A stretch of DNA of 57,788 nt, counting the filler, from Bipalium vagum (Eukaryota), in NCBI GenBank assembly GCA_037834085.1. It is 3 parts of 3 records of this genome, joined end to end, with 100 filler letters (N's around TTAATTAATTAA, not from the genome) between each part and the next. Parts side by side here need not be neighbours in the genome. Positions count along the whole stretch, not along the records: positions 39,475 to 57,788 come from JBBMKC010029455.1; 2 more parts are not named here. One strand, 5' to 3'. Under the pieces are notes generated by a model. That model saw only the letters and a program-made list of their open reading frames with translations. It ran no database searches and was not told the origin of the DNA. Positions 39,475 to 57,788 of the stretch are shown one piece after another (within the stretch, counting starts at the first letter, position 1; the number at the start of each line of letters is the position of its first letter). The position numbers were made by a program, and so were the translations under genes.

Positions 39475-39849
39475 TATTGAAAACTCGAGGAAAAGTAATT
39501 TCCCTGTAATAATTGTTAATAAATTGAAATTAGAAAAAAAATTATTTAATCAATTGAAGATTGTGAAAAATGTGCAAATATTGATTTGGTTTTATTATTT
39601 ATTATAAAACCAAAATTTTTAAATTAATCATAATAATTTTCACAATAATTTGAGTATTTCTTTCTCTCAATGACGTTCTTTTCATTCGTCTTAAAATCGT
39701 TATCAAAAGAATTTACCCCGACATTTTTTTATTAAACCATTTTGTATTTTGTTTCTAAACACGGAAATTAAAACATACGAAATATCATTGTTTGCCGTGA
39801 GGTCGTCTGCCAAATGAAAATAAGGTGGATTGAATATAAATTGTACAAT

Positions 39850-40140
39850 AATATTATAAATAATATAGTATAATATGAATAATATAAATAATATGAATAA
39901 AATAAATAATATTAATAGTATAAATAATATAATTAATATAAATAATATAATATGATATGAATAATATGAATATTATAAATAGTATAAATAATAAAAATAC
40001 TAAAAAATAATAATAATATAATATGAATAATATAAATGATATAAATAGTATATATAATATAATTAATATAAATAGTATAAACAATATAAATAACATAAAT
40101 AATATGAATAATAAAAATAATAAAAATAATTTATAATTAA
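39850..40140. repeat. AT-rich low-complexity degenerate 9-mer repeat (AATATRAAT)
   Basis: Repeated aatatgaat/aatataaat/agtataaat units. Confidence 0.75.
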
Positions 40141-40739
40141 AAACAATTTTCAAATAAACAACCTGGTTAAAGAGCGGAATATGAATTAAAATGTATTAGA
40201 CTGTGTAGAGAGTTTACGTAGAAATTTTCCAATATTTTATCTCCTCGGAAAGCTTATTGTGAAACTCTTAGTTTTCGACACTCATTTTCTTTACAATTCA
40301 CATTCATAAAGGATAATTAAAGATAGACAATTACCTCTTCAGAAGAAAGGAAAAGAGACGAATACATATTGTAATTTAATATGAAGTAAACAATTTTTAA
40401 TAGTTATTTGTTGATCATAAGTACAATGCATAACCGTCACATGGCTCAAAAATATTGAAAATAGGCATTCCGTTTGTTTATTCTAAGGAAACGAATAATA
40501 TAAATATCCAAACTTTCTCAAATTCAATGATTATATATATTAATAATGTCACATGCAACAATACTTAATGATTTTATTTTTTTTAATTCTACTTCTTTTA
40601 ATTTACATTCTGTTGTGATAGGGTTTATTCTTTAAAATATCTTTCCCTATATTATTTATAAAAATAATATATAAAAATTAATAACTTAGAAAAAACCGAA
40701 AACCTAAAGATTCAAATTAAAAAAAAAGAGATCACTAGA

Positions 40740-41230
40740 AAAATATGCTACAATTACCATTTTAATAGAATTTAAAACCTTCAAGGCGGTAGTTGAAAAA
40801 GCCTGTAGAACAAGAAGATCTAAAAGTAATTTTAATTACAGCAAAAACAAAGAATCATTGAAAATTTAAAAACCAAATCTTACAATATCTTGCAAACTTA
40901 GACTATCTGCAAAAAGTATTCGTACGATCACTTTTTCATAATAAAAGTCAGATTTATTGACCCATTTATTTGAAATAAAGGTAAATTGTTATTATTAACT
41001 AATTGTTAATTTTACATCATAAATATCGTGCTTAACTTCAAATGTCATAGATGTAACAGTATATACACAGGGAAACACAGCGTCATCTCAGAACCCGTAT
41101 TAGTGAACATTCTCAACTAAGCAGAACTGATAAAGATTTGTGAAGTTAGCACAGGATTTAGTAAAATTATGAACAACTTGGATAATAACTACGAAAGAAA
41201 AGTCTACAGACCATTATTAATTATAAAACA
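40740..41230 (+). mobile_element. Penelope-like retroelement GIY-YIG endonuclease remnant
   Basis: NIVLNFKCHRCNSIYTG, then a frameshift, then TQRHLRTRISEH. This is the Penelope YKFxCxxCxxxYIGxTxRxLxTRIxEH signature. Confidence 0.75.
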
Positions 41231-42744
41231 TTTTTATAATTAATGTTTTTTCACATTACACCCTCTTTTTTGAAATAAGGAAATTTTTTAATTATTTTAT
41301 TTCTTTAATGATTTTTATTTATTTTTACATATAAATAATTGAAAGTTTGACTAATTTTACAACTTTAAATTTTCTGACATTATTAACATGACCGAAAATT
41401 TTAAAAATTTTCACATAGTATTATGAAATCGAATTTATAATCATGATAATATATTAATAATGGACGTTTAATGATATATTAATCAGGAATAATAATTATC
41501 TGCACTCCTTTTAATATTGTGAATGATAATGATTAGCGGAATAATGGAAGACTTTGTGAAGAAACATGTAAGAGATTGTTTGTTATATGAATTCGAGTTG
41601 GGAACAAATGATTCAGATGCAACCAATAGTTATTTTTATAATTTTCAAAATATTATTAAAACAAATTCCGGTGAAACAGCACAAGTAATAAATCTTTGAT
41701 CTGCTCAGGAAGCACAGTTCACTGATTTGTTGGATTATAAATTTTTATTTTCAACGATGCGCTAAAAACTCAAGCTCAATTCTTTTGTCTTGTTGTAGAT
41801 TGTTTTAAATTGAACAAATATATCAAATTACCATTTCACTAATCTGATAATTATTAGATCACAGTCGCTATGTTAAATTGTTTGTTTGACTAGTGCAACC
41901 CGTGCCACTGGGTATTTACTTTACCGTTATTCTATCATTGTTACTTTATCAGTCTCAACACATTTAATCGAAATTAACCACATTTTATTTTTGGATTAAT
42001 TTTACTTTTTAAAAAAAAGGAAAAAAACACCAAAAGATAAATATTGAGACATTTTCGGTAAATATTTAAACAAAATATTAATTTTTTTTCTTATCACTCT
42101 GAAACGTGAACTAAAAAACACAGTTTACCATTTTGCGTTTATGATTGAAAGTCTGTTTCGATCAAACTTTATTTTATTTATTTATATATTTGATTGCCTA
42201 CCTGGAAAAATCATCTAAGATATTTATAAAAAGTTGTGACGGAGACTCTAATCTCAAAAAATTAGAGAAACGACAAAGGTTGATAAGATAAAGTCAGTTT
42301 ATGTAACATGTAAGTTGTTTAAGTAAATCTTATTTTTTGTTTTAATTCATTAATTTAAGCCATTTCGATGCCAAATTATTATCGGATATACTTACACATT
42401 ATAGTCACCAACGTGACTAGGTTTTCTATTTGACCTTATTCAGCTGCGTAAACTAATGTTCATTCACCCTACGTATAAAAATACGTAAACTTTTCGTATT
42501 ATTGATGATAAACAAGATGATATGAATGTGTTCTTATTTGAAAAGCTGTAAAATATTTTAAAAATTTAATAAAATCAATTAATAAAACAAGAAAAGATTC
42601 TCTCAACTTTCAGAAGATTTTTTAACAAGATTCTAAAACTGAAAAATAAATAAAAACTAATTATTACTATTATTGATATTATTATTTCAGAAAAAAAAAC
42701 ATTTTTTGCTAAATTGTCCACTACGATAATGTCATTGTTTTTTA

Positions 42745-43354
42745 TTATTCTTTGCATCCTTCGAGAATTATCGGTGCCGCCACAGTTAAAATGTTTTTAA
42801 CCGAAACCTTCACTTTTTCCGATTTAAAATAGTTTAACAAGACCTCTTGCAAAACCGGGACCGTTGCCTATGAAGAAGAAAACATCAATGAAAAGCGTGT
42901 TTTTTCTTAACACAAATCAATTTACCACAAAATGCTCACAAGTAACATTTCTGACTTTGTGGCTTGAGCCAATATGCTTTAACATATCCCCAAGCTCACC
43001 CTCGTTATCCAAAGTCTCAAATACTCCATTTAGAGCGTTAACAACCCTCAATCCGTGAGCCTTTAGCTCCGTTGAATTTATAATCTCATCCAACGAATTC
43101 ATCCCGTCAAATTTTTTGAACAGTTTTATAAATTCCGGATGGGCCGTAAATAATCTGGAACGAAATGGAAAAATTGAAATAAATGAGAATAATCGATCTC
43201 ATGACACTTAAATATCGTTATAAATAAATGAGAAATATATAAAAAAAGACTTTCTAAAAAAGATTTGTCCGATCAGAATTTTTTTGTTTTTATCCGTCGA
43301 CACGTCTTTCCATTCGCTCCACAAGGTTTCCCTGACGTCTCTCGTAATGCTCAT
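42745..43354 (-). CDS. Single-domain intracellular globin (myoglobin/cytoglobin-like), 151 aa, 3 exons
   Basis: Exons 43354-43251, 43154-42926, 42867-42745, with GT-AG introns of 96 and 58 nt at B12.2 and G7.0. Protein: MSITRDVRETLWSEWKDVSTDKNKKILIGQIFFRKLFTAHPEFIKLFKKFDGMNSLDEIINSTELKAHGLRVVNALNGVFETLDNEGELGDMLKHIGSSHKVRNVTCEHFVATVPVLQEVLLNYFKSEKVKVSVKNILTVAAPIILEGCKE*. It has Pro C2, Phe CD1, distal His E7 (KAHG) and proximal His F8 (SSH). Confidence 0.95.
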
Positions 43355-43366
43355 GGTGAAGTTGTT

Positions 43367-43430
43367 GAAATGACCGCTGTCTGAATATTCACACTTTTAT
43401 ATAGGCCTATGAATTTGCATTGGTCATCTG
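43367..43430 (-). promoter_or_regulatory. Globin core promoter: E-box, CCAAT, TATA and Inr
   Basis: Minus strand: CAGATG (43430-43425) overlapping TGACCAAT (CCAAT 43423-43419), then TATATAAAAG (43403-43394), then Inr-like TCATTTC with its A at 43371, about 30 nt after TATA and 17 nt before the ATG. Confidence 0.6.
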
Positions 43431-43899
43431 TCCAGACAAATAGAGATGAAGTGCATAACAGTTTCTATTATGTTTAAATTAAACGAAAAGCCACTGTTAT
43501 TTTTGGTTGTTTTTTCTTCTTCGCAACCTTGTTAATATTATCTTTTATATTATTACTTTTAAGGTTTTCTGTTCATCAAACTGATTTTATGGATTTTGTT
43601 TTAATGATTGATATTCCATTTTACTAATAGCAACATTTATTTATATAAATATATTATTATTATATAAATAATAATGCTCTATATATTTTAATTTTAATAT
43701 AATTTAATAATTATGATCTGCTAAAAAAAATTATAATACTTAAACATTTTTTTAAATATTTTTTTTTAATTTAATTATTAAAAATTAATTTATAAAAAAA
43801 TTAGTATAAACAAAGCAAAAAAAATTAATAATGACCAGAGAAACACCAGGCTGCTGCATACTTAACGCAGGTTTTATGTGTTAACTTTAAAGCATATGA

Positions 43900-44420
43900 C
43901 TCTCAAAAATAAACTTTATTCATCAAAATAAGATCCATTAGATTCAACGCATTGTTTTGCCAAGGAAAAACAGGTTTTTTCGTTCGTTAGCATAAAAGTC
44001 CGTAGTTCTGGAATCCATGAAACCTAGAGCGCCATTTTACAACAGAGTCCTTGTCTTTGCACTATTTCTTTTGCAAGAATTGATCATGAAATCTAAACAT
44101 GTGGAGAGGTCTATATAATGTGCTGGGTGAAGAAGAAAGTAATCTTTCGTGTTGATTTGAGAGGTAAAAATCGATGAGGCACTTCAGTTGACCGTTGTTA
44201 ATACTTCCATTTTAATTGTAAAATTACGATAATTGAAGTCAATATTTCCATTTCTGAATTTTTGGAATGAACGTTAAACTTTGAATTCGTTAGCATTACT
44301 TTCTCTCTCCAAGTCTTTTTGACATTTCGACTTGTTTCTGTTGCACTACTCCCGAGTTTAAATTCGTAAAAGAATATGATTCGTAAATTCTCTTTTGACA
44401 TTCTTTGTTTTCAAGCTACA
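43900..44420 (-). mobile_element. Mariner remnant upstream of the globin
   Basis: MSKENLRIIFFYEFKLGSSATETSRNV. Confidence 0.75.
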
Positions 44421-44649
44421 TACAAAGATATAATTTTTTTTTGAAGATTGTTTATATAAGGAGCATAAAAAGATTATCTTTAAAATAATATATAGAAAAA
44501 TTTTAGTAAAAAAAATTGTCTATTTTAAAAGTATGAATACCATAAACCTTCATGGATTTTTCACCTGTTCGATATTAAAGAAATAAACCATTAAAAAACA
44601 ATGTTATTAAAATACTATTCAATTTTTACAGGGTTTTCATTTAATTTCG

Positions 44650-44900
44650 ACAACTAATAACATTTATTGCGAAAAGTTGTTAATCCATGATCACTTCTTT
44701 TCTTGCGCATCTTGACAGATATTTTATCATATGTTTATAAAAACTTAAACAATCATTGCTTGTTATAAGAAGAGATATATATTTAACCAGTTTTATTAAA
44801 TCAGATTCATTTGTAGGGGCTGATCTTTGAACCAATCCTTTCCAGTTTGTAAACATTTCCTCAATCGGGTTTAGAATAATAATCTGCTCTTTTTTCAATG
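44650..44900 (-). mobile_element. Tc1-like transposase C-terminal remnant
   Basis: LNPIEEMFTNWKGLV...YLSRC. Confidence 0.7.
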
Positions 44901-45329
44901 ATAACGAGGCAATTTCGACGTTGAGGTATTCTATATATTCTGTAAATGGTATAATGAAATCCTGTTTAATTACTAATTATTTATATTATTATTTATATAT
45001 TATATTATTATATATTATAGATATGATGAAGATGTAAATTTAAAGTTGTAATGACCTTAATTATCTGAATTATTTCTATGTCAGTATTACCTCTTTCAGA
45101 TCTGTAGATGTCTGTCAGTCTAGACAGCCACTAAAATTTACATTATGTTTTGCTTTAACTCTATATGATTGACTTTTGTACCATTCTCCCCATATTGTCA
45201 GAGTAGTTTAATCATTTCAACAATATTTCATAAATGTTTAACATAAAGTATATGTGCATTTTCTATTGTTATATACGGCTAAGCTGAACTTTGTATAATG
45301 TTTTTGGACTATTTAATTATGTGATATTG

Positions 45330-46040
45330 TCATGAACCAACTCTTGATCCTACCATTTGTGATAACATAAGATCTAATGGCTCCAACTGATTCTCCATAC
45401 AGTTGCCACATGTAAATATTATTTTATCATTGGCATAAAGGATGTGCAAACTATCTCTCATAATTTTTTATTACTTTCTATCATTTACTTTCAATATTTA
45501 TATTAATCGGACTTGCTAAATACAGTCTAACCTCATTTTGGGTCATGTCATCGGGCAAGGCACCTCATTATCCTTGATAAACTCACTCTTAGTGACAATA
45601 ATTAAACACCTAGATTTGTCTGTATTAATTATTGGTCGAATAAAATTTTTTTGAATCTTTCAGTCTACTGCCAAAATAGTAATTAGCAATAAATAAATTG
45701 AGATTTATCACTGATAAAAATATAGTTGATTAAACCTTGAAACTTTAACGGGAAAATTATTGGTCGATGATTTACTATGATTTTAAATGTGGCTTTACTC
45801 TGAAACAATGTCTAGATCAACTTCATTTAGTCTTTCGAAATGAATTACCACCAAAGACCTGCATTTACAATTTTCTCGTAGAATTCAAACATGTGAAGAC
45901 AAACTTCAGCTACTAATATTGATGGTGGGAGTGATATAACTGAAAGAGATTGAAGCATGTTGATATTGTCTTGAAAGCAATTGATACCATTTGAAGATAT
46001 GGAGACTTTAGAGTCATCAACTTTGCAAATAATCATTAAA
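45330..46040 (-). mobile_element. Decayed non-LTR (LINE) reverse transcriptase remnant
   Basis: CKVDDSKVSISSNGINCFQDNINMLQ resembles (F/Y)ADDxK...LQxDxxxL. Heavily degraded. Confidence 0.4.
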
Positions 46041-46269
46041 TTTAGTTTTCAGGTATTCTAAGCACCTTGCATTATCAAAAAGTAAATTGTCATTTTTTTC
46101 AAATGAAATTTTTTCTGAAAATTTCTCTTCAAAATGATGTAGATCTTCAAATAATTTCGAAATCTTGTGAATCGATAGTGAAAACCAAAAATACTATTAA
46201 AACCCTTTCAATTCTTATTCAAAAATTATCATTATTCACTTCATTTCGGTTTTTTTTCAAAAATAATCA

Positions 46270-47598
46270 TGACTTGAATACATTATCACGGTAAGATTTT
46301 TTTGTTAAAACTAATGTACAAAAGTTGTGCTTGTAATAATTTATTTATATACAAAGAATTTATTTATATCATGTAATTTAAATTTAGTTTAGCATGGAAA
46401 AACAACCGATCTATCTGATTATGAAAAGGGACAGATAGACGCCTTTAATTTGGACAATAGATTGAACGCTGAGATGGGAAGACTTATTAACTGTTGCAAA
46501 GTATTTAAGTAGAGAAAAAAAGTAAAATTAGTGTAGAAAACAGAAGGTGTATGAAATTAGCAACAATCAATAATTTATCAACAAGAAAGATAGTAAATGA
46601 ACTTTCAACGAAAGCGAGTTGTTCAACAATCTTAAACGAACTACATGGAAATAAAAATATGAAGTTTTGCTAAAATTAAAAGTCAGCCAAAATTAAAATT
46701 ACAACATATAAAGTTTTATGGTCTCAAGAACATCAGACTTGGAAAGATGAAAAGTGGAGCAAAATTGTATTTAGTGATGAAAAGAAGTTTAATCTAGATG
46801 GCTCTGATGGGTTAAATTTCTATTGGCACAACTTCAATTTGAAAAAAGTACTTTACAAAAAGACCATTTGGGTGTGGTGGATTGATGATTTGGGGAACAA
46901 TTGGATATATATCAGAAACTCTTCTTTAACAATAATTGATGGAACCGTAGACTCGAAAGAATAATAGATAATATAAGATGAACATCTTTTTAAATAATAA
47001 TTGTATTTTTCAACAAGATAACGTGCCTATTCACGGATCGAAAATAACCAAACAATGGCTACAAAATCAGGATATGAATACATTATATTGGTCCCCGCTT
47101 AGTCCAGATTTAAATCCCATTGAAAACGTTTGGGAAATGGTATTCAGACGGATCTATGAAAAAGAAAAGTTTGATGAACTTAAAAATGATCTATGAAATG
47201 TGATTATTCAAAAACGGTCGAACATTAAGCGCGGAACCATTCATCAGCTTTTTCAAAACATGAAATCTCGTGTTTAGGGTTTAATTGTAAAAAAGAAAAC
47301 TATATTAATAAATAGTTTGAATTTAACTTTTAAAAATTTTTTTTATTCTTTGTAAAATTAAATATATATTAATAAATAATTTTTACCGTGATAATAATTT
47401 TGGTCAATTTTTTTATAGAAAGTGTTGAATTTTTCTTTAAAATTATTAATTTTTTTAAGTTTTCAATGCAGTAATTCTTATTTAATAAATTAGGGACTAT
47501 TTCCATACTTAAACCAAAATCTAGCACTTTCGTTTATTATTATTGAGAGCAGTTCTCCAAAAAAATCCAACCGTGATAATTTTTTTTGTCAGACTTAT
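46270..47598 (+). mobile_element. Decayed Tc1 (DD34E) element between globin and Rbfox
   Basis: DLSDYEKGQI, VFSDEKKFNLDGSDG, and FQQDNVPIH...SPDLNPIENVW with 34-residue D-E spacing. ATTATCACGGT at 46281 occurs inverted at 47385 and 47570. Confidence 0.88.
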
Positions 47599-47944
47599 CT
47601 TATTTTCTGAAAGAAATTGAGTTTAAAACAACAGTCAGACCTCGTTAACCCGAATTATTTTTTAAAAATTTCCTTTGAATTACAATAGATATAAAAGTGA
47701 GTATTTATTTTTAGAAATAATTTTTAAAATTAACTTGGTGCAACAATAAAGAGGAAAATAATAAGCAACCACGGATGTTGTTTTATAAATTGTGCCATAA
47801 ATTTGTCTTTGTTATTCAAACTTAAATGAAACATCTTTTATGTATGAAGAGATATGAAATAATTTAATACATTTTTAAAATTTGCTTCACTCTCTAAATA
47901 TAATAGTGATAACTTTTATTTGATTTTGTTTTAATAGTATATAG

Positions 47945-48900
47945 CTAAAGCGCCAAATATGACCGTAAACTATATTTTAGTAATTTTAGGACACAATTGG
48001 AAAACTTTCCCGAGTCGGAAGTCATCTGTTTTATTAAAGAAGTTAAAGTTACAGACAGAATAAACAAAAAGACAATTATGTTGTGATTTGCAAAGTTAAA
48101 ATCGGGTGACACCGGCCTCCAACTTGCTTGAGGAAGGGTATCCTCGTTTGATGAAGATCTCTTGACAGAATCTGTTGAATCCAATTCGTCAATTAGCATA
48201 TGGAGTTGTTTCTTTAAAGTCCATATTCCACAATATCTTCATTCTATTGAGAAAAATATAGTTTCTCGGATCGATTCTTATGAACTGTAGGAAACCATAC
48301 AGAATATATAAATGGTTATTTACAAATGACTCGCATGTTTTTTGTAAAAAAATACAGCAATTTGGAAAAAACTCATGTCCATATTTTGTAACTTCAGAAG
48401 AATCATTTTCATTGAACCACTGCCAAATGATAATAGTTTAAACTCGGGTGAAGTTATAACGACAAAATATCCTTCTTTAATCAATTCGAAGTTTGTATTA
48501 CAAGCGAATAGTGCAAAGCATCATAAATCAATGAAATCAATAGCAATTATCAACAGCCTTGATAGAATTGAACTATTGCCACATATACCGTAGTTACAAG
48601 ATATCACAGTATTTGACTTTCATTTGTTTAGTGCATCTGTACATTAACATCATAAGGTGAGGGAATTCTTTGACAATAACCTGCCAAACAGATGAATTCG
48701 AAGAGGTTCAAAGGAATTTTCTTCTCCATAAACAGATCTAACGCCAATGGAATTTTTCTTCTGGGGTTATATTAAGGACAAAGTTTAAAGCATGACATAA
48801 AAACCCAGAAGTTTGCCTATCAATCGCGTATCGATATGAACAATATTTCAACCGACAGTATTTACATTTTAAGCACATTTGTTAACAAATTATTGTACAT
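47945..48900. mobile_element. Nested Tc1/mariner debris
   Basis: Minus strand: SLKKQLHMLIDELDST...EDTLPQAS. Plus strand: IIFIEPLP, LLPHIP*LQDITVFDFHLF and TDLTPMEFFFWGYIKDKV. Confidence 0.6.
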
Positions 48901-49473
48901 TGATGTTATAAACCGTATCTCATAAAATGTACATACTTTTCATGGTACTTGTCAATTTATTAAAATTACATCATAAATAATTATCTTGACTAAACTCTGT
49001 CAGTTACTTACTTTTATAAAAATCTAATAATAAAACATTATTTCTATAAGTGTAACCTTTATGACACTACCTCTTGAAAATTAATTAAATATTCACATTC
49101 ACCCAAATCATCTCTAAAATAAAAAAGTGAAATATTTCTCTGAGACGAAACGAAATAAAAAAATAAGCTGAATAATAAAAATTTATTTTATTCCAACAAC
49201 AAAATGTCCAATGTTCCATATTGAAGTCTAATCAAAACACATTCTAATAGATATTTCTATTTAAAATAATTAAATTAAACAATAAATTCTTGAAAAATCA
49301 AATCCCGCCTCAGAAAGTAAGAAGTCAACCTTTAGTGAAATATATAATATTTGTATTTCATAGTATCAAAGAACTGTTATCTTAGTACAAGGTGTTTTAG
49401 TCAAAATCTATACAAAAATGATGTGTAATTAGAAATAATTGAAATTAAAGGTGAAAATAAAAGTAGGCCTCTG

Positions 49474-52400
49474 TCAATACGGAGAAAATCGCTGGTAACT
49501 AGAACTGTTTCTATAAACTGCCGGACCTCCAGGGTTGTTTGGTAAAGTGTAAGTCATTCCAATTCTGTTGAGAAAATTTGCATCTGACGCTGAGACAAGG
49601 CCGGTCAGGTCTGGAATATATCCCAGAGCCGAGCATTCTCTGAGGAAAATAAATTTCAATACAGAGAACCGGTGAAAAAATTATGATAATCTTTCCACTC
49701 AGACTTTAATTTTTATTTATCTTTTATTTGATGACTTGTTGATATAAGAGATAATTATAAAAAAAATTTTTTTTGAAAATTATTATATAATTATAAGTTT
49801 TTTTTATTGAAAATCAATTTTAGGAATATTATTTATGTAAATTAATAATAAAAAAATTAATATTATTGACGAAAAATGTGTTTATCAACAAAGATTTTTA
49901 TGTCAAACCTATTTATTATATATGGAAAAAAGAGTTAATAATTCTAGACAATGTCTTCTCATATGACGTTTGGATTTCACAGAACATCATTAGACGTTAA
50001 AAATTGATAAATGAAGCATTGTAGATTTTAGAAAACAAGTCTTTCTTTAGATATTATTTTACCAAGATTTTTTGGCCAAAAATTATTCACTGTTTGTCAA
50101 TATTCTATTTGAGCAAGGTTGCAGCTTGTGTTCGCAAACTCAATTTTAAATTACAATTTTTATTATTATAATGATTACATAATTATCTTAAATAATCAAA
50201 CGCCGTTGATTGGTTGTTGACAAGCTGGGCATATAAAACTGTTCATAATTAGTCTCCTTTGTGCGTTTAATTATTCATAACAATTGTGTAATAATTGCTC
50301 TAATAATATTTTGTTTCAAATTACAAACTGAGTTTACGACTGAAAGGTGCAACTTTTCCAATTTTTTTTCATATAAAGAAAAAAATGCCCAATAAAAGAT
50401 TAAAATTGTTGATAAAATAGTCTTGTCAATGTATTACTTTTACCAAAATATGCAAAATATTTTAGAACCTATTTTAATACCATTTCTATTAGGAGATTTT
50501 CAAAGAAATAAAAACCGAATGACTACTTGCAGAGTTTATTCTAATAATTTAATTCTAAAATATCAACTAAATTCCCGGGGCTGGGGTCATTTGGGTCAAA
50601 ATCTAACAGTGAATATTTCAAAATTTCCCAAAAAAATGTTAACGAAAAGAGAATTATCAAAGAATCATTAATTGGTGGAAATTAATAGAATGTTTACCCA
50701 GCAACTTCTGGTATGTTAGAACTGTTCGGATTTCCAATTTGACCTAGTGTTGCTGTGGTTGTGGGATTTGAAAATCCTGGAATTGTAGATATCCCTCTCA
50801 GCATTCCGGCTGCTGCATATTGATTGATTGCAGCCATGTTTAATGGCTAGAAAAATGTAGCAAATCAATCTGGTGAAATCTCTACCCCAAAACTATACTA
50901 TCTAATTAAATATTAACATACTATGGCTGCTTGTAATCGTGGATCTGATGCTGCAACGGCATAGCTCGCAGCTAACAGCGCTGTTGGATCAGCTAACAGA
51001 ATTGGTTGATATGGCAATCCAAATCCGGGCGCTAGTGCTTTCAAAGCGGCTTGGTGTGGAAGCAGAGTTTGCATCATTGTTCGCATCCCTCTCATTGCTA
51101 AAGCAGCTGTTTTTCAAATCAATAAAGTCGCAAATAGCCGATTGTTTGCTTACCTGAATGTTCCACTTTCTTCTTGGTAATAATCCTGGCAGTGGCATTG
51201 TTAATCTAAATATGTCTCAGAATTATCATGTACGATTTTTATTCTCTATTCCACTAGCAAAACCCATAAATAAAACATTCCATTAATTAAGGAAATTGCC
51301 GATTTCATTTCACCAATTATGATGCCACCATGCAACAAGAGTAATCGACCTTTAATCATTTCAAGAACAGATAACGTGGTTATCTAAGAAAAGTTTGAGG
51401 CCTAACATCTCTTGTATTTCTATTGTTACAATTTTTAGAGGAAAATACTGTTATATAAAAGAAAGATTTTAAAGATGTTCACATATAAAAATGAATGGTA
51501 TATGGAAGTTTTTTACAGCATTTGTTTAAGTTATTGATTATCGTTTAATCTGGTACAGGACATTGTTTTATTTCATACGACTTAATAAAAAATATAATAA
51601 TAATGAAAATTCAATTTTACTTCATTAAAACAAGCCATAATTATTGGCACTGAGAATGTCCTCAACGCTAAGGCGATATATGTCAGAGATAATTGCTTTT
51701 CCTTTACAATACTTAAGATATTTTTATTTATTTATTTTTACTATTTATCAAGGCAAACTTTTGGGGGGATTACTTATTTTAATTATATTAACTAAACAAA
51801 ATGATATCCCAGTGTATATAATTAATATCTCCGTACAATTCGTTCAGAACATATAGACATTCACGCAAGATTTGACGATAATGCTCGAATTTCAAACATC
51901 AGCATAAACGAATCATTAATAACTTGTTGAAGATGAAGGAAACTTACATCTGAAATAGTTAAGACTTGTGTAACGAAGATTTGTTATTATGGGTGGAAAT
52001 TACGTCCCATCAATTCAGCGATTATTACTACAAATAGGTAATGTCATCGTTGTAATTCGGAATAACAATAGCAATTGATATTAGCTGCTTAGTAAAAGTA
52101 AAGACAAACCTCGATTTTTCTGCCCTCTACGATAGTGCCGTTGAGACTCTCTCTGGCTTTCTCGGCTTCTTCGACGGTTGAGAACGTAACAAATCCAAAT
52201 CCCTAAGGAAATTTCTTATATATGTTAACCAAAATTTGGTATACCTTCGATCCACGTTCATTAAAAATAATTTCAACATCAAGTATCGTACCGTAGGGCT
52301 GAGATTAAAATAGTGAGGTTCGGAAATAATTATGTTATTACTCCTAATAATTGTCTAAGATCTGATTCTCTGAACCTGAAAGGTATGTTGGAAATATGGA

Positions 52401-53027
52401 GTCGTTTAGGAGATCCGGTTGCATTCGGTGTGACAGAGCACGGATTATCTGTAGTTACTTCCGGTCTTTCGCTAATCGTGTTCGGATAATCGTCTTCTTT
52501 TTTTGAAGTAGCCTGGTTTATCTTGATTATTCGATAATACTTTGATAATAAAATAAAAAACTATATATACCGCTGTTGAATTATTGATATTTGGTACTGA
52601 TATAGAACCATTCTGACCCAATGTATTCGGTGTAAAGTTCGACATAACAGATTTCGTCTGATCAAAATTTATCAAACCAAAAGGATCTGTCAAAGTGGCT
52701 TGTTGATATCCCAGAGGAAATCCTGCAAACTGAAACATGGGAGTCGTAGAAAATAATGACGATGCCATTTCCAATGACGAGGCCGAAGACATAGCAGGCA
52801 GACCCCATTGGGCTTTGGATTGTTTCGAATCGTTTTCATTGTCAATGTTCTGTTGAAAATTCAAGTTCCCCGATGAAGGATAGAAACCCGCTGCTGCTGC
52901 GGCAGCTGCTGCATCGGTCGATAACATCTGTAACAATACGATAAAGTACAATGAGCCGGTCGAGAAACGAAACGAAACTCACCAGTTTATTCAAAGAAAG
53001 AGAAGCTTGTGGCCACATGAAATTCAT
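49474..53027 (-). CDS. RBFOX: RNA-binding Fox-1 homolog (Rbfox family splicing regulator), 9 coding exons, about 423-432 aa
   Basis: Exons (minus strand): 53027-52983, 52927-52571, 52512 (or 52539/52521)-52342, 52298-52245, 52202-52110, 51205-51154, 51106-50922, 50846-50698, 49639-49474. All introns are GT-AG and phase-consistent. The spliced RRM reads [79 protein letters not shown], the diagnostic Fox-1 RRM. The C-terminus is Ala-rich and ends YQRFSPY*, matching the Rbfox RF(A/S/T)PY NLS. Confidence 0.96.
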
Positions 53028-53130
53028 GATTGCAGATATAATGGCATTCAACAATGATGAAGCTGTTAATAACACGTTTCAGGTCTGCAAAAGTAGAAAT
53101 ATGACTAATGTCGTTATCTAAGACGAATTA

Positions 53131-53240
53131 CACGTGCATTCTGATGAATTTTCCCATGTGTGCACTCAGGCCCGCCTTTCCCGTGCGGTATGCACACAAG
53201 CTCATTGTGCAATGTTCCCGTGTGTGCATGATGCACACGA
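53131..53240. promoter_or_regulatory. GC-rich repeated motif and hairpin cluster upstream of Rbfox
   Basis: Five TGCRCNC cores within about 80 nt (53158, 53161, 53191, 53222, 53232), three TTCCCRTG (53151, 53178, 53215), two GTGTGCA...TGCACAC inverted pairs, and CACGTG at 53131. Confidence 0.5.
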
Positions 53241-56223
53241 TGCAACCGGCAACTCGTTGGAACGTTGTCGATATTCCTTGCAGATTTTCTTTTGGCATTT
53301 TCAAGTGCAATATGGGGATGTCTTTAACAGAAAATTATTTTTGAACAAATGTGCTGGCATAACAACATTTCAACCGGTTTATCTTTCGTTTTGCAATGAT
53401 GCAGAATTCAATGTTTTCGTTGGCTTTCAGTATTTACTTTGCTCCGGTTTCGTTTTATTAGGCTTTCTTGTTGGGACAAATCGTTGAAAGACTTAACGTT
53501 GTCTTGTTTGGCTTGATTAAACAGAAAAAGAGAGGAGATATTAAACAATCAACAGATTAAATGAAAAGGTTTAATTTGGCTAATATTGACCTTTTGCGGC
53601 CGAATTTTAATGATTTTTTAAGGCAGTTAATTTATTCAAAAAATAATATTTGATAAAATATACAAAAATAAATATTAAATTGAAAAAATTAAAATAGAAT
53701 ATTATCAAAATACCAAAATATATTATTATAAGTGAAGACTTGGCTTAGCCTTATTCAGTTTGATTAAAACGAAAAAAGATATTAAATAAAGAAAAATGAA
53801 AAGGTTTAAGCTGCTTAAGATTTTTATTTTAAAGATCTTTTTTAGTAATTAATTATTTTTTTTAAAAATTATTTATTTTTAATTTAAAATAAATTTAAAA
53901 TAAATAATTTAAAATAAATAATATTAAATTAACAACATCTATAATAAATGGTTAATATTGATTGGTTAATAATTTAATAAAATATTACTTTTTAATACTT
54001 TAATATTTTTTAACTGAAATATAGTAAGTGTCAACTATTGGTTGCGCTATATAAATATTATTCCGTTTATTTTGTACTAAGAAAGTACGCTTCGACACCC
54101 TGATTTTTGTTTCTTCATTTATGGTAAGATATATTCTTTTTTTACATATGTTATATTTTTTTCCACGAATAATTGCAAATTGAATAATTAATTTTCACTT
54201 TCTTTATTATTTGAAACCACAATTTATTTTATTGGTGTATTATTTTTTATCATTATATGGTATTTCTTATCAAGCCCATTTTCCACTTAGTACATCTTCA
54301 AATATGTGGGAAAAGGAATAAGAACGAAAATTATTTTGGACTTTATATGAACTTTATCAATCTTAGAATTAAAAATATAATTTGTTTACGTCATTTTCTG
54401 TACTATAATAGACAAAATATGTAGAATTGTTGCATGAGAGTCTGGAAATAATCTCTAGAGAAAGGAGTGCTAACGACAACCTCAATTCCATTCAATTGAT
54501 AATAATAAATATATCTAGAAAATCTCTCAATAAATGCACATCTTAGATTTGTTGAGTACTGTACTTAAGAAACTAAAACTGGAATATTTTATTATTTAAA
54601 TTCATATTTATTCTTATTACATAAGAATAATAATATTTTTTTTATTATTTTTCAGAATTATAAAAATATTGACGAAAAAACAAATAATTAATAAAATATT
54701 GATTTAATATAAATATTAGAATAATTCACTCATTATTTGATTTTACAATAACATTTTTACTAAGTGTAACATTTCTTAAGCAAATTTCCAATATTTTTGT
54801 TTATGCATTTAAAATTTTAATAATGGCACCGTTATAATTATTTTTTTTTATACATGTTGTGTAATATGAGGTAATTTTTGATTTACATAATTGTGAGATC
54901 CTTAGTAATCAAGTTTAGGTTAAAGGTTAGGGACTAGGCCAAGGAACAATGATATCATCTAACAGAGAATTATTACAATCCATTGGCATTCTATCAATGC
55001 CATAAAATATCCCCTAATTTATTATTAAATATGAATAAAGATGAATTCATTATACTTCATTATTGTTCTAATGAATTACATTACTTCCACCAGTGAAATC
55101 ATTATTATTAGTTAGATATACTTTTTATGACAGAATTCATTGTCCTTGCCTTATTGTCATTTAGATAAAAGAGAAACTTCATTTGATTGAAAATTTCTAT
55201 TGATAAAAAATAAAGAATTCTGTCTCTTAAAAAGTTAAGGCATTAATACAATAAATAATAAAATGTTATTAAAAATATTATTATTATTATTATTAATTAT
55301 TTCATCACCAGATTTCTATTGGACATTATTTTTTAAATTTAAAACACTTTAAAGTTAATAAAATTGTAAGATAAGATCTAAATGCTTAATGAAACCAGAC
55401 ATGAGTTCTGTCAAATAAATATTTAATGGATTGTTTGGTTTTGAAGGACCAAGGAAATTACAATATAATTCTAAATTTTCATGTTAACCTTGGACAATAT
55501 ACGACAACCAGTTTGTTTAAATTTCCTTATTTTGTTATTCAATCTCAAGGCTGACATTTTGAAAATGTTATATTGATTGAGAAAAATCGTTTGTTGACTT
55601 TTTTGAATAAGGGAGTTATGAAACCCTTTGTGTATCAAAACTCGAACATGTCTGTGTTACGAAGTGTTCTAATGAAGATCTATAATTATTTTTAAGTTTG
55701 TTTGGTTTAATTCGATTTTCGGCATTAAATTGACTTTAATATTTATAAAGTTAAGAAAATTGAAACAGAAAATTGTCATCCAATCTTAAGAGAAATAACT
55801 AAAGATATGACAATGGTCAAAGTAGTTGTTTGGAACATTCTTCGAGAATGAGACATCTTCTGTTCCAAAAGAACTTTGTTTTTCAAAACAGTACCGTAAA
55901 CAAGTTGCTGAAGATATATTTGAATATAAGTAAATTTTGACCTCTTCCCTTAAAGCATCACACTCATTGATAAGAGATTTTGGAAATGGTTTATAAAATA
56001 TCCAGCAGATAAGAGGATTTAGTGAATAAACAGGAAGAAAAAGTAAATCATTTATAGATTAAATATTATGTACATAGAATTCGACAACACAATTTTCGAA
56101 GGACCACATTTAAATTTATTCCAGTTCTTATAATATATTAATTTCATCTATTAGTTTCCAAATACATTGTGGGCTTTCATTCACTCCTGGATCAAAAATA
56201 TGTCCAAATAAAAGTTAGTTGAC

Positions 56224-56310
56224 ATTGGGAAGACTGCCGAGATAGACGAAAGCAAAATCGGAAAACGCCATCACCATGGTCACGATGTCGAGGAGACCAA
56301 GGTTTTGGAA
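56224..56310 (+). mobile_element. Merlin (ISXO2/IS1595-like) transposase remnant
   Basis: IGKTAEIDESKIGKRHHHGHDVEE matches the G..VEIDESK.GKRKY.RG..VEG motif. Confidence 0.7.
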
Positions 56311-57788
56311 ACAAATGAAATCTTTAGTAAATATATTATGCTGTAACCTACCACTCTGCATAGAGAAAGGTCGAAAGTTTCATAAACAAAACTAAAATTT
56401 TCTAATTGACTCAAAATAAGTTTTTATCATTAAAAGATATTAAAAAAATATTGACATTTTGATGTTCACCTCACATTTAATGGAAAAATTGGAAGTGAAA
56501 GGGTATAGAACTTCCCCTTTCTTCACAAATAATTAAAACCCATTATGTAATGGTTTCCTACGATCACTTCAATCAGAAATGATTTCTCTTTTGTTATAAA
56601 AATATGTGTATGGTTCTGCTTGTTCAAATTAATTGTTTTAAAAATCAAATTAGCACTCCATATAAAATCATTTGTTCCTTTTCAGATGAATTCTTTCTCA
56701 TTTTTTATTTTTCTTTTAAGATAAAAGAATCCATTTTAAAATCTCTTTTGGTACTACATTTCAAAACTTCTGTGGCAATTAATTTTTCTTGGGTTAAAGC
56801 ATATTATTTTTAGATAATCTTGTATAGATTTTTTTAAAATTTTAAGGTCATTTATTTCACTATCAGACTTTTCTTCTCTTCCTTATGATCTTAGACCATA
56901 AATTTATAAAAGCCCCTTCATATCTCCATCAATGAATTATTATAACAAACCACTTAATCAATAATTGACGAATTTTCAAAGAGTTACGGATTTGAAGGGC
57001 AAGGTACCACAACTATGGAAATCATTTTCAATGATGATAGCTCCTCAAAGGATGTCCAAATAACTCTTATTTATAAGATTCGAAGTCTCCACCATCCACT
57101 TTAAATCCCTTCGATAATTTGCAGTTTTAAATTTTTATGCTTCTCTTAAGATAAAAATTTTTCTCTTAGAAAATATTAATTAATTTTCTAAAGTTATTTA
57201 TTAATTAATTAATTTTAAAATTATACATAATAATATATTAATAATAATAATATATTTTTAACTTCATAAAAAAACTTAATAATAGAAAAAATAAGTTTAC
57301 TACAATAAGTAACAAGCGAACTTTGTTTTATTGAAGTCTTATGGAAAATAGATCACATTTTCTCAACATTTCGCTTTACGTAGAAATAATGAGAATGAGA
57401 TATCTCACCCCTTCTGAAGGCAAAGAGATTACACTTGAAATGTTAATTTGACGGATTTCAATATTAATCTTATTTCTCAACCTCACTGCCTCGTCTGGCG
57501 ATTTCGCGAAATAATAATCACTTAATAATTGAAATAAATTTTAATTATAAGAGAGAATTTGTTTTAGTTTTTGCAAAACTTTAATATTTAAAATGAAATA
57601 ATAATTTAATATTTCATTTTCAGAACTTAATCATTGTTACTTTTAGGATTATTTAAATAGACAAAATAACTGGTATATCCATAATAATAATTAAAAATAA
57701 TAATTAAAATGATAATAATAATAATAAAATAGTAATAATAATTAAAATAAAATAATATTAATATTAATAAATGATATTAATAATAAAA

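Follow-up and report, generated by a model that had tools for sequence, protein, structure and literature searches.

A gene of the Rbfox family and a single-domain globin gene are direct neighbours on the minus strand of a 57,788-nt stretch of DNA from Bipalium vagum (GenBank assembly GCA_037834085.1), the globin lying on the 3′ side of Rbfox. This stretch, called the window here, joins three parts of the assembly end to end; both genes lie in the part spanning positions 39475 to 57788 (JBBMKC010029455.1; ~27% G+C, zero N), and all positions count along the window. The arrangement resembles that of RBFOX2 and the myoglobin gene MB in vertebrates, and we favour, with a probability of about 0.65, an adjacency that is specific to this lineage and whose likeness to RBFOX2-MB is coincidental. 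The initial annotation had placed Rbfox ahead of the globin in the same orientation, without an assembly gap and with transposon debris between them, and exon reading bore this out: 42745, 43354, 49474 and 53027 are exact gene landmarks, the spacer of 6.1 kb contains no N, and a Tc1-like element with inverted ends was found in it along with mariner fragments. In the assembly the two genes are physically adjacent, and 98% of the sampled words of positions 42700-52600 occur in one public sequencing run, which is possibly the assembly's own source.

In the human genome, MB follows RBFOX2 on its 3′ side and in the same orientation; RBFOX1, RBFOX2 and RBFOX3 share chromosome arms with HBA, MB and CYGB at distances of ~0.1 to several Mb, the RBFOX and globin genes of chromosomes 16 and 17 being megabases apart. 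The gene order of the Mb-RBFOX2 neighbourhood, to which the initial annotation had likened the locus, is published, the series HMOX1-MCM5-RASD2-Mb-(APOL3-like)-RBFOX2-MYH9 being reported as conserved in amniotes (PMC4524481). The other vertebrate neighbours RASD2, MCM5 and MYH9 were not found in the 18 kb piece.

Structure of the Rbfox gene

The upstream gene is identified by its RRM exons and its C-terminus as an Rbfox orthologue, a predicted RRM splicing regulator (Table 1). Its product comprises 408 amino acids (aa) when read from 52927 and 423 aa with the optional first exon, and the stop codon TGA occupies 49476-49474, 49474 being its final base. Six of the eight introns measure 42-75 nt and the remaining two 904 and 1058 nt. 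The PDB matches of exon RB belong solely to the Rbfox family, namely RBM9/RBFOX2 (9.7e-8), RBFOX1 and ASD-1 of C. elegans, and exon RD also matches RBFOX1 chains in the PDB (5e-9). A degenerate DNA pattern for a 12-residue peptide internal to exon RC matched at least 120 metagenome contigs; GFGFVTF follows directly after the pattern in 37 of them, and in most of the others the next codon begins with GT, as expected of an intron donor. The 54-nt and 93-nt RRM exons have the sizes of their vertebrate counterparts, and in mammals and flies the skipping of the 31-aa cassette exon yields a dominant-negative Rbfox.

Rbfox proteins of other animals bind (U)GCAUG, and the protein encoded here may be expected to bind the same RNA motif, judging from the conservation of its RRM alone. 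The C-terminal exons, scanned separately against Pfam, gave no match to Fox-1_C, and an exact-product look-up of an exon-A open reading frame of Rbfox returned no record. The C-terminus reads YQRFSPY, which fits the family motif R-F-[AS]-P-Y, and a PY-type nuclear localisation signal has been described at Rbfox C-termini (PMC3126832).

Structure of the globin gene

The three exons of the downstream gene align collinearly with a profile made from 91 related globins, and exon 2 matches the Pfam family Globin (PF00042) with an E-value of 7.1e-17 and 62 bits against a cut-off of 22. In the profile alignment the haem pocket is kept, with Phe CD1 in FKKF, the distal His E7 in KAHG and the proximal His F8 in SSHK. 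The product is a single-domain globin without an N-terminal acylation site. Intron 1 cuts the codon preceding LFTAHPE after its second base (profile 46/47) and intron 2 is of phase 0, directly after EHFV (profile 121/122); by the established globin literature these are the classical ancestral positions B12.2 and G7.0, and they agree with the positions of the introns in vertebrate globin genes. The exon 1-2 junction is backed by P0001, a database protein with 75% identity that reads straight across it; comparison of exon 3 with the metagenome protein P0007 by BLASTP gave no support. With the TATA-like and AATAAA motifs at its two ends, the globin gene is probably transcribed separately from Rbfox.

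Table 1. Coordinates of the two genes and of the features around them (positions along the window)
Feature	Position	Strand	Remarks
AATAAA overlapping globin stop codon	42741..42746	-	consensus match only
Globin gene, whole coding span	42745..43354	-	3 exons, ATG at 43354, stop TAA, 151 aa
Globin exon 3, G/H helices	42745..42867	-	40 aa + stop TAA; profile positions 123-161, E 0.016, weak but collinear
Globin exon 2, with Phe CD1 and both His	42926..43154	-	Pfam Globin; profile positions 48-121, E 2.5e-32
Globin exon 1, A helix and beginning of B helix	43251..43354	-	profile positions 17-45
TATATAAAAG, TATA-like motif	43394..43403	-	49 nt upstream of globin ATG; consensus match only
Mariner transposase HTH_48 fragment	44201..44410	-	Pfam E 1e-6
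Possible second mariner HTH_48 fragment in spacer	45749..45913	+	Pfam E 0.061, under curated cut-off
Degenerate Tc1-like DNA transposon, ~1.3 kb	46277..47585	+	terminal inverted repeats, broken transposase frame
Rbfox, whole coding span	49474..53027	-	9 exons, GT-AG at every intron, lengths in frame
Rbfox last exon	49474..49639	-	RFSPY + stop; PY-type nuclear localisation motif
Rbfox exon RG	50698..50846	-	sequence reading, frame arithmetic
Rbfox exon RF, Ala/Leu-rich C-terminal region	50922..51106	-	sequence reading, frame arithmetic
Rbfox exon RE, 17 aa	51154..51205	-	sequence reading, frame arithmetic
Rbfox exon RD, 93 nt, 31 aa	52110..52202	-	AG/GT borders; RRM_1 E 8.9e-9
Rbfox exon RC, 54 nt, 18 aa	52245..52298	-	sequence reading, frame arithmetic
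Rbfox exon RB, RRM start	52342..52512	-	6 of 6 PDB matches are Rbfox-family chains
Rbfox exon RA, low-complexity N-terminal region	52571..52927	-	without Pfam match
Rbfox possible first coding exon, 15 aa	52983..53027	-	GTGAGT donor, phase arithmetic; without homology support

Spacer and surroundings

The inverted repeats of the Tc1-like element in the spacer, at 46277 and 47585, are 28 nt long and 86% complementary, and the element contains a match to DDE_3 (Tc1-type) at 46972-47193 (E 2e-11). Beyond the transposon fragments, the greater part of the spacer matched no repeat or family in the searches made, and an Rfam scan of 43800-57788 gave no match. The tolerance of the spacer for at least one Tc1-like insertion with intact inverted repeats, and for mariner debris, argues against a tightly constrained regulatory block. 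GCAUG occurs neither in the globin gene nor within 200 nt of it; the Rbfox gene has one (UGCAUG at 51334, in the 904-nt intron) against 1.7 expected. The shared regulatory block hinted at in the initial annotation gained no support. Given the transposons in the spacer, the lack of GCAUG at the globin and the globin's own promoter-like and poly(A)-signal motifs, we infer no functional coupling of Rbfox and the globin.

No other gene is recognisable in the 3.2 kb past the globin or in the 4.8 kb before Rbfox. A further mariner HTH_48-like fragment lies at 41523-41696 (E 8e-4), bringing such fragments to three, on both strands, which suggests that mariner elements inserted and decayed repeatedly near the globin. 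The G+C content rises to 0.38-0.39 across 51975-53474, that is, the 5′ end of Rbfox and 300-500 bp upstream of it, compared with 0.21-0.29 around, and this rise may mark the Rbfox promoter and 5′ untranslated region. Positions 39706-40195 have ~20% G+C and long stop-free frames of I/L/F/Y codons, and look like AT-rich simple repeats rather than coding sequence.

Relationships of the globin

Word-index protein searches with globin exon 2 and with P0001 retrieved P0001 (metaclust, 75% identity) as the sole relative; an exact-product look-up of P0001 returned no record, and a metagenome scan with the globin alignment no relative. An exhaustive profile search with P0001 gave 200 matches at E ≤ 1e-3, headed by globins with several domains from a sea urchin, a sea star and mussels, which rank highest because their scores add up over many domains. 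The nearest single-domain relatives of P0001 are P0007 (42%) and the fragment P0009 (74%), and its nearest named relative is globin P0011 of the tapeworm Schistocephalus solidus (38%, E 2e-17). Vertebrate cytoglobins (2e-9) and globin X (9e-9), picked out by short motifs, occur among the matches with similar E-values, and none of the 150 profile matches listed carries the short neuroglobin, myoglobin or haemoglobin motifs looked for. A PDB search with exon 2 had cytoglobin and myoglobin on top (best match, cytoglobin 6q6p, 2.7e-8), and the ESM Atlas returned generic globin clusters only. Two side observations were made on the proteins retrieved: P0009 sits on a 1 kb contig, and the giant multi-domain globins comprise 12 domains in the sea-urchin protein and 14 in P0003 (2461 aa), a JGI metagenome protein annotated as 'hemoglobin-like flavoprotein' whose cluster member P0151 has 3326 aa.

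A maximum-likelihood tree of 59 rows, in which the window globin was represented by exon 2 alone (76 aa) together with P0001 and P0009, has a starred split (96/95) between a globin-X side and a cytoglobin side. On the cytoglobin side, the window exon 2 joins P0001 and P0009 in a starred trio, which is nested together with tapeworm globins in a starred clade of nine rows (96/85); the same side also has globins of sea cucumber, Capitella, acorn worm, brittle star, mite and bug, and several of its members are annotated "cytoglobin-like". The tree does not show the grouping with neuroglobin or globin X that the initial annotation had named as refuting, but approximately unbiased (AU) tests did not separate a cytoglobin from a globin-X placement: forcing the trio with globin X gave a log-likelihood difference (ΔlnL) of 24.8 (p 0.143) and forcing it with cytoglobin one of 8.0 (p 0.364), both unrejected.

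Neighbours of Rbfox and of related globins in other animals

The flanks (±10 kb) of related globins were compared at eight loci of seven other invertebrates, with one paralogue per species, a comparison low in power whose taxa include no close relative of the source genome. No Rbfox gene was found within 10 kb at any of the eight loci. Glandiceps, Holothuria and one further invertebrate locus were judged from called-gene tables only, and tblastn with the window Rbfox exons found nothing at the Dermatophagoides, Capitella, Protopolystoma and Schistocephalus loci. The globin neighbours were IF4E and a Ras-family gene in Dermatophagoides farinae, TSEN34 and an MCM gene whose C-terminal domain is of the MCM3 type in Capitella teleta, an AMP-binding enzyme and a second globin in the acorn worm Glandiceps, and tandem intronless globins at the further invertebrate locus; none with a family was seen in the sea cucumber Holothuria, and none at all at the two loci of the tapeworm Schistocephalus or on the 6.4 kb contig of the monogenean Protopolystoma.

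Globins of two of these loci occur in local groups, a convergent pair 3 kb apart in Glandiceps talaboti (L127 10001-16185) and tandem copies at the further invertebrate locus (L130 5710-7425), and such local duplication makes the right paralogue for synteny tests hard to choose. In D. farinae (GCA_024713945.1, L001 10001-18476), a cytoglobin-like globin (+) and a Ras-family gene (-) of 290 aa converge, only 0.9 kb apart, a layout repeated in L002. The exons of the Ras-family gene read ...FGSSRVGK / TSIVRRIL...LDTSGTYPFP / MRDLAIQTADAFILVYAVDD; the P-loop GSSRVGKT and the motif DTSGxxPFP are reminiscent of RASD or DIRAS, and searches of the PDB and of the ESM Atlas (generic Ras clusters) did not place the gene in a subfamily. 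In C. teleta (L003 1-14188), the globin stands beside TSEN34 and an MCM gene of 817 aa, a family-level echo of the MCM5 near vertebrate MB; its Pfam matches include the MCM3-type C-terminal domain, its length presumably fits MCM3 and not MCM5, and this MCM3-like neighbour shows how easily family-level echoes arise.

Starting from Rbfox, no globin was found on 120 Rbfox-bearing metagenome contigs examined (at least 120 exist), a weak negative in that only about six of them reach at least 3 kb past a recognisable Rbfox stop and several of these six resemble transcripts; no close kin of the window Rbfox was present among the 120 either. Amphioxus globin regions have been reported by Ebner et al. 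to be without synteny to the vertebrate Mb, Cygb and Hb loci (PMC3087553). A microsynteny block table for 49 genomes has, in the part examined, the Rbfox orthogroup once, in a "Bilateria novel" block of Lingula with CCNF, CCDC40 and TBC1D16, and the CYGB orthogroup in a separate block of amphioxus (PMC8851819). Across the eight loci and the examined part of this table, the Rbfox-globin pair is limited to the present genome and vertebrates. CCNF, CCDC40 and TBC1D16 were not found in the 4.8 kb on the 5′ side or the 10 kb on the 3′ side of the window Rbfox.

Origin of the adjacency

If the adjacency is lineage-specific, as we favour, two ordinary, intact and independent genes would have been brought together within this lineage through rearrangement. 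Flatworm genomes, reported to keep almost no conserved synteny (PMC11410931), speak for such an origin, and several observations weigh against it. By chance alone, a globin of the cytoglobin side would directly follow Rbfox on the same strand with a probability of a few in 10,000, a rough figure that assumes ~15,000 genes and 5-10 such globins and that a single piece cannot fix. Order and orientation match RBFOX2-MB and RBFOX3...CYGB of the human map, and the negative comparative tests are low in power (flanks of 10 kb, a single paralogue for each species). If the mite Ras gene were of the RASD type, the vertebrate neighbourhood would be echoed independently a second time. The low chance figure is tempered by the fact that the pair was picked, for echoing vertebrates, from a very large scan, and that family-level echoes are easily come by.

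The foremost alternative, which we regard as unlikely, is an inherited microsynteny, in which Rbfox and the ancestor of cytoglobin, myoglobin and haemoglobin were already neighbours in the bilaterian ancestor, perhaps as part of a block RASD-globin-Rbfox, and the arrangement would have been kept both here and on vertebrate chromosome 22. It would account for the order and strand shared with vertebrate RBFOX2-MB (gene order from PMC4524481). The position of the globin on the cytoglobin side (96/95) and the low cost of a cytoglobin constraint (8 lnL, p-AU 0.36) agree with it, as does the mite, where a cytoglobin-like gene and a Ras-family gene are convergent 0.9 kb apart, the single observation here that might raise its odds. 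The presence of RBFOX1, RBFOX2 and RBFOX3 on the chromosome arms of HBA, MB and CYGB in the human map would be a further trace of it. No intermediate taxon, however, backs the pair, neither the eight loci nor amphioxus nor the examined part of the block table. The globin is not the sister of cytoglobin and its globin-X affinity is unrejected (p-AU 0.14), transposon insertions separate the two genes, and the mite Ras gene is not placed in a subfamily. After two whole-genome duplications, moreover, the adjacency on chromosome 22 can come from the loss of intervening genes.

Of the pre-vertebrate linkage proposed in the initial annotation, adjacency, order and strand hold, and its inheritance gained no independent evidence; the further proposal that the globin is a positional orthologue of the Mb/Hb/Cygb ancestor agrees with the cytoglobin side of the tree (96/95) and found no backing in the AU tests, which reject neither placement, or in the flanks of related globins and of amphioxus, which were negative (PMC3087553). 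That Rbfox-globin, or perhaps RASD-globin-Rbfox, is a surviving Urbilaterian neighbourhood that seeded the MB, CYGB and HBA paralogons is an unlikely proposition.

Somewhat less probable again is a loose ancient linkage, with Rbfox and a cytoglobin-type globin on the same ancestral chromosome, in keeping with the vertebrate paralogons, and juxtaposed independently here and on vertebrate chromosome 22 through local rearrangement or the loss of genes. The sharing of arms by the three human RBFOX genes with HBA, MB and CYGB fits such a history, and so does the conserved MB-RBFOX2 order of amniotes (PMC4524481). Against it, flatworms are reported to have lost nearly all synteny within the phylum, and their ancestral linkage groups as well (PMC11410931), and the 18 kb piece is too short to bear on linkage at the chromosome scale. 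An assembly artefact, in which repeated transposon sequence led to a false join of two genes that lie apart in the real genome, is very improbable: the Tc1 and mariner copies of the spacer are likely repeated elsewhere in the genome, but the piece has no N, the public run (maybe the assembly's source) contains 98% of the sampled words, and in the searches made the bulk of the spacer, transposon fragments aside, matched no repeat or family.

The field has yet to settle which globins of invertebrates are orthologues of the vertebrate myoglobin/haemoglobin/cytoglobin lineage; globin trees are weak, and not even amphioxus has yielded a flanking-gene anchor for this lineage (PMC3087553). If true, a conserved pair of Rbfox and globin would provide an orthology anchor, the first for that lineage outside chordates, and the window globin, if inherited in place, would by its position be orthologous to the ancestor from which all vertebrate-specific globins descend. 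As it stands, the locus is one suggestive coincidence, whose worth is that of a cheap and well-defined hypothesis and not of evidence. With a lineage-specific adjacency, which is likely, it would present well-preserved Rbfox and globin genes in an AT-rich, transposon-bearing genome.

Comparison with known systems

The nearest published counterpart on the Rbfox side is block 407 of Robert et al. (2022), which in the examined part of that source joins Rbfox, CCNF, CCDC40 and TBC1D16 in Lingula, without a globin, and has CCNF-CCDC40-TBC1D16 in Saccoglossus and in sea urchin (PMC8851819); among published cases of deep microsynteny, we found no other with Rbfox. Within the gene, exon RD equals in size the cassette exon conserved inside the RRM of Rbfox in mammals and flies, a 31-aa RRM exon being common to both (PMC3126832).

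On the globin side, the tapeworm globins P0011, P0016 and P0025 of S. solidus are the nearest named relatives of the window globin; they belong to the same starred clade (96/85) and, unlike it, have no Rbfox within 10 kb at either of their two loci. Vertebrate cytoglobin shares with the window globin its side of the split from globin X, yet is not its sister group, and it has N- and C-terminal extensions whereas the window globin, with 151 aa, is without them. The globin/Ras-family pair of the mite is arranged tail-to-tail, like MB and RASD2 of vertebrates. The likeness to RBFOX2-MB itself is one of order and strand: here as in vertebrates, the globin adjoins the 3′ side of Rbfox in the same orientation. 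In vertebrates some 100 kb separate the two genes, and amniotes have APOL-type genes in between, whereas in B. vagum the gap is a transposon-bearing spacer of 6 kb.

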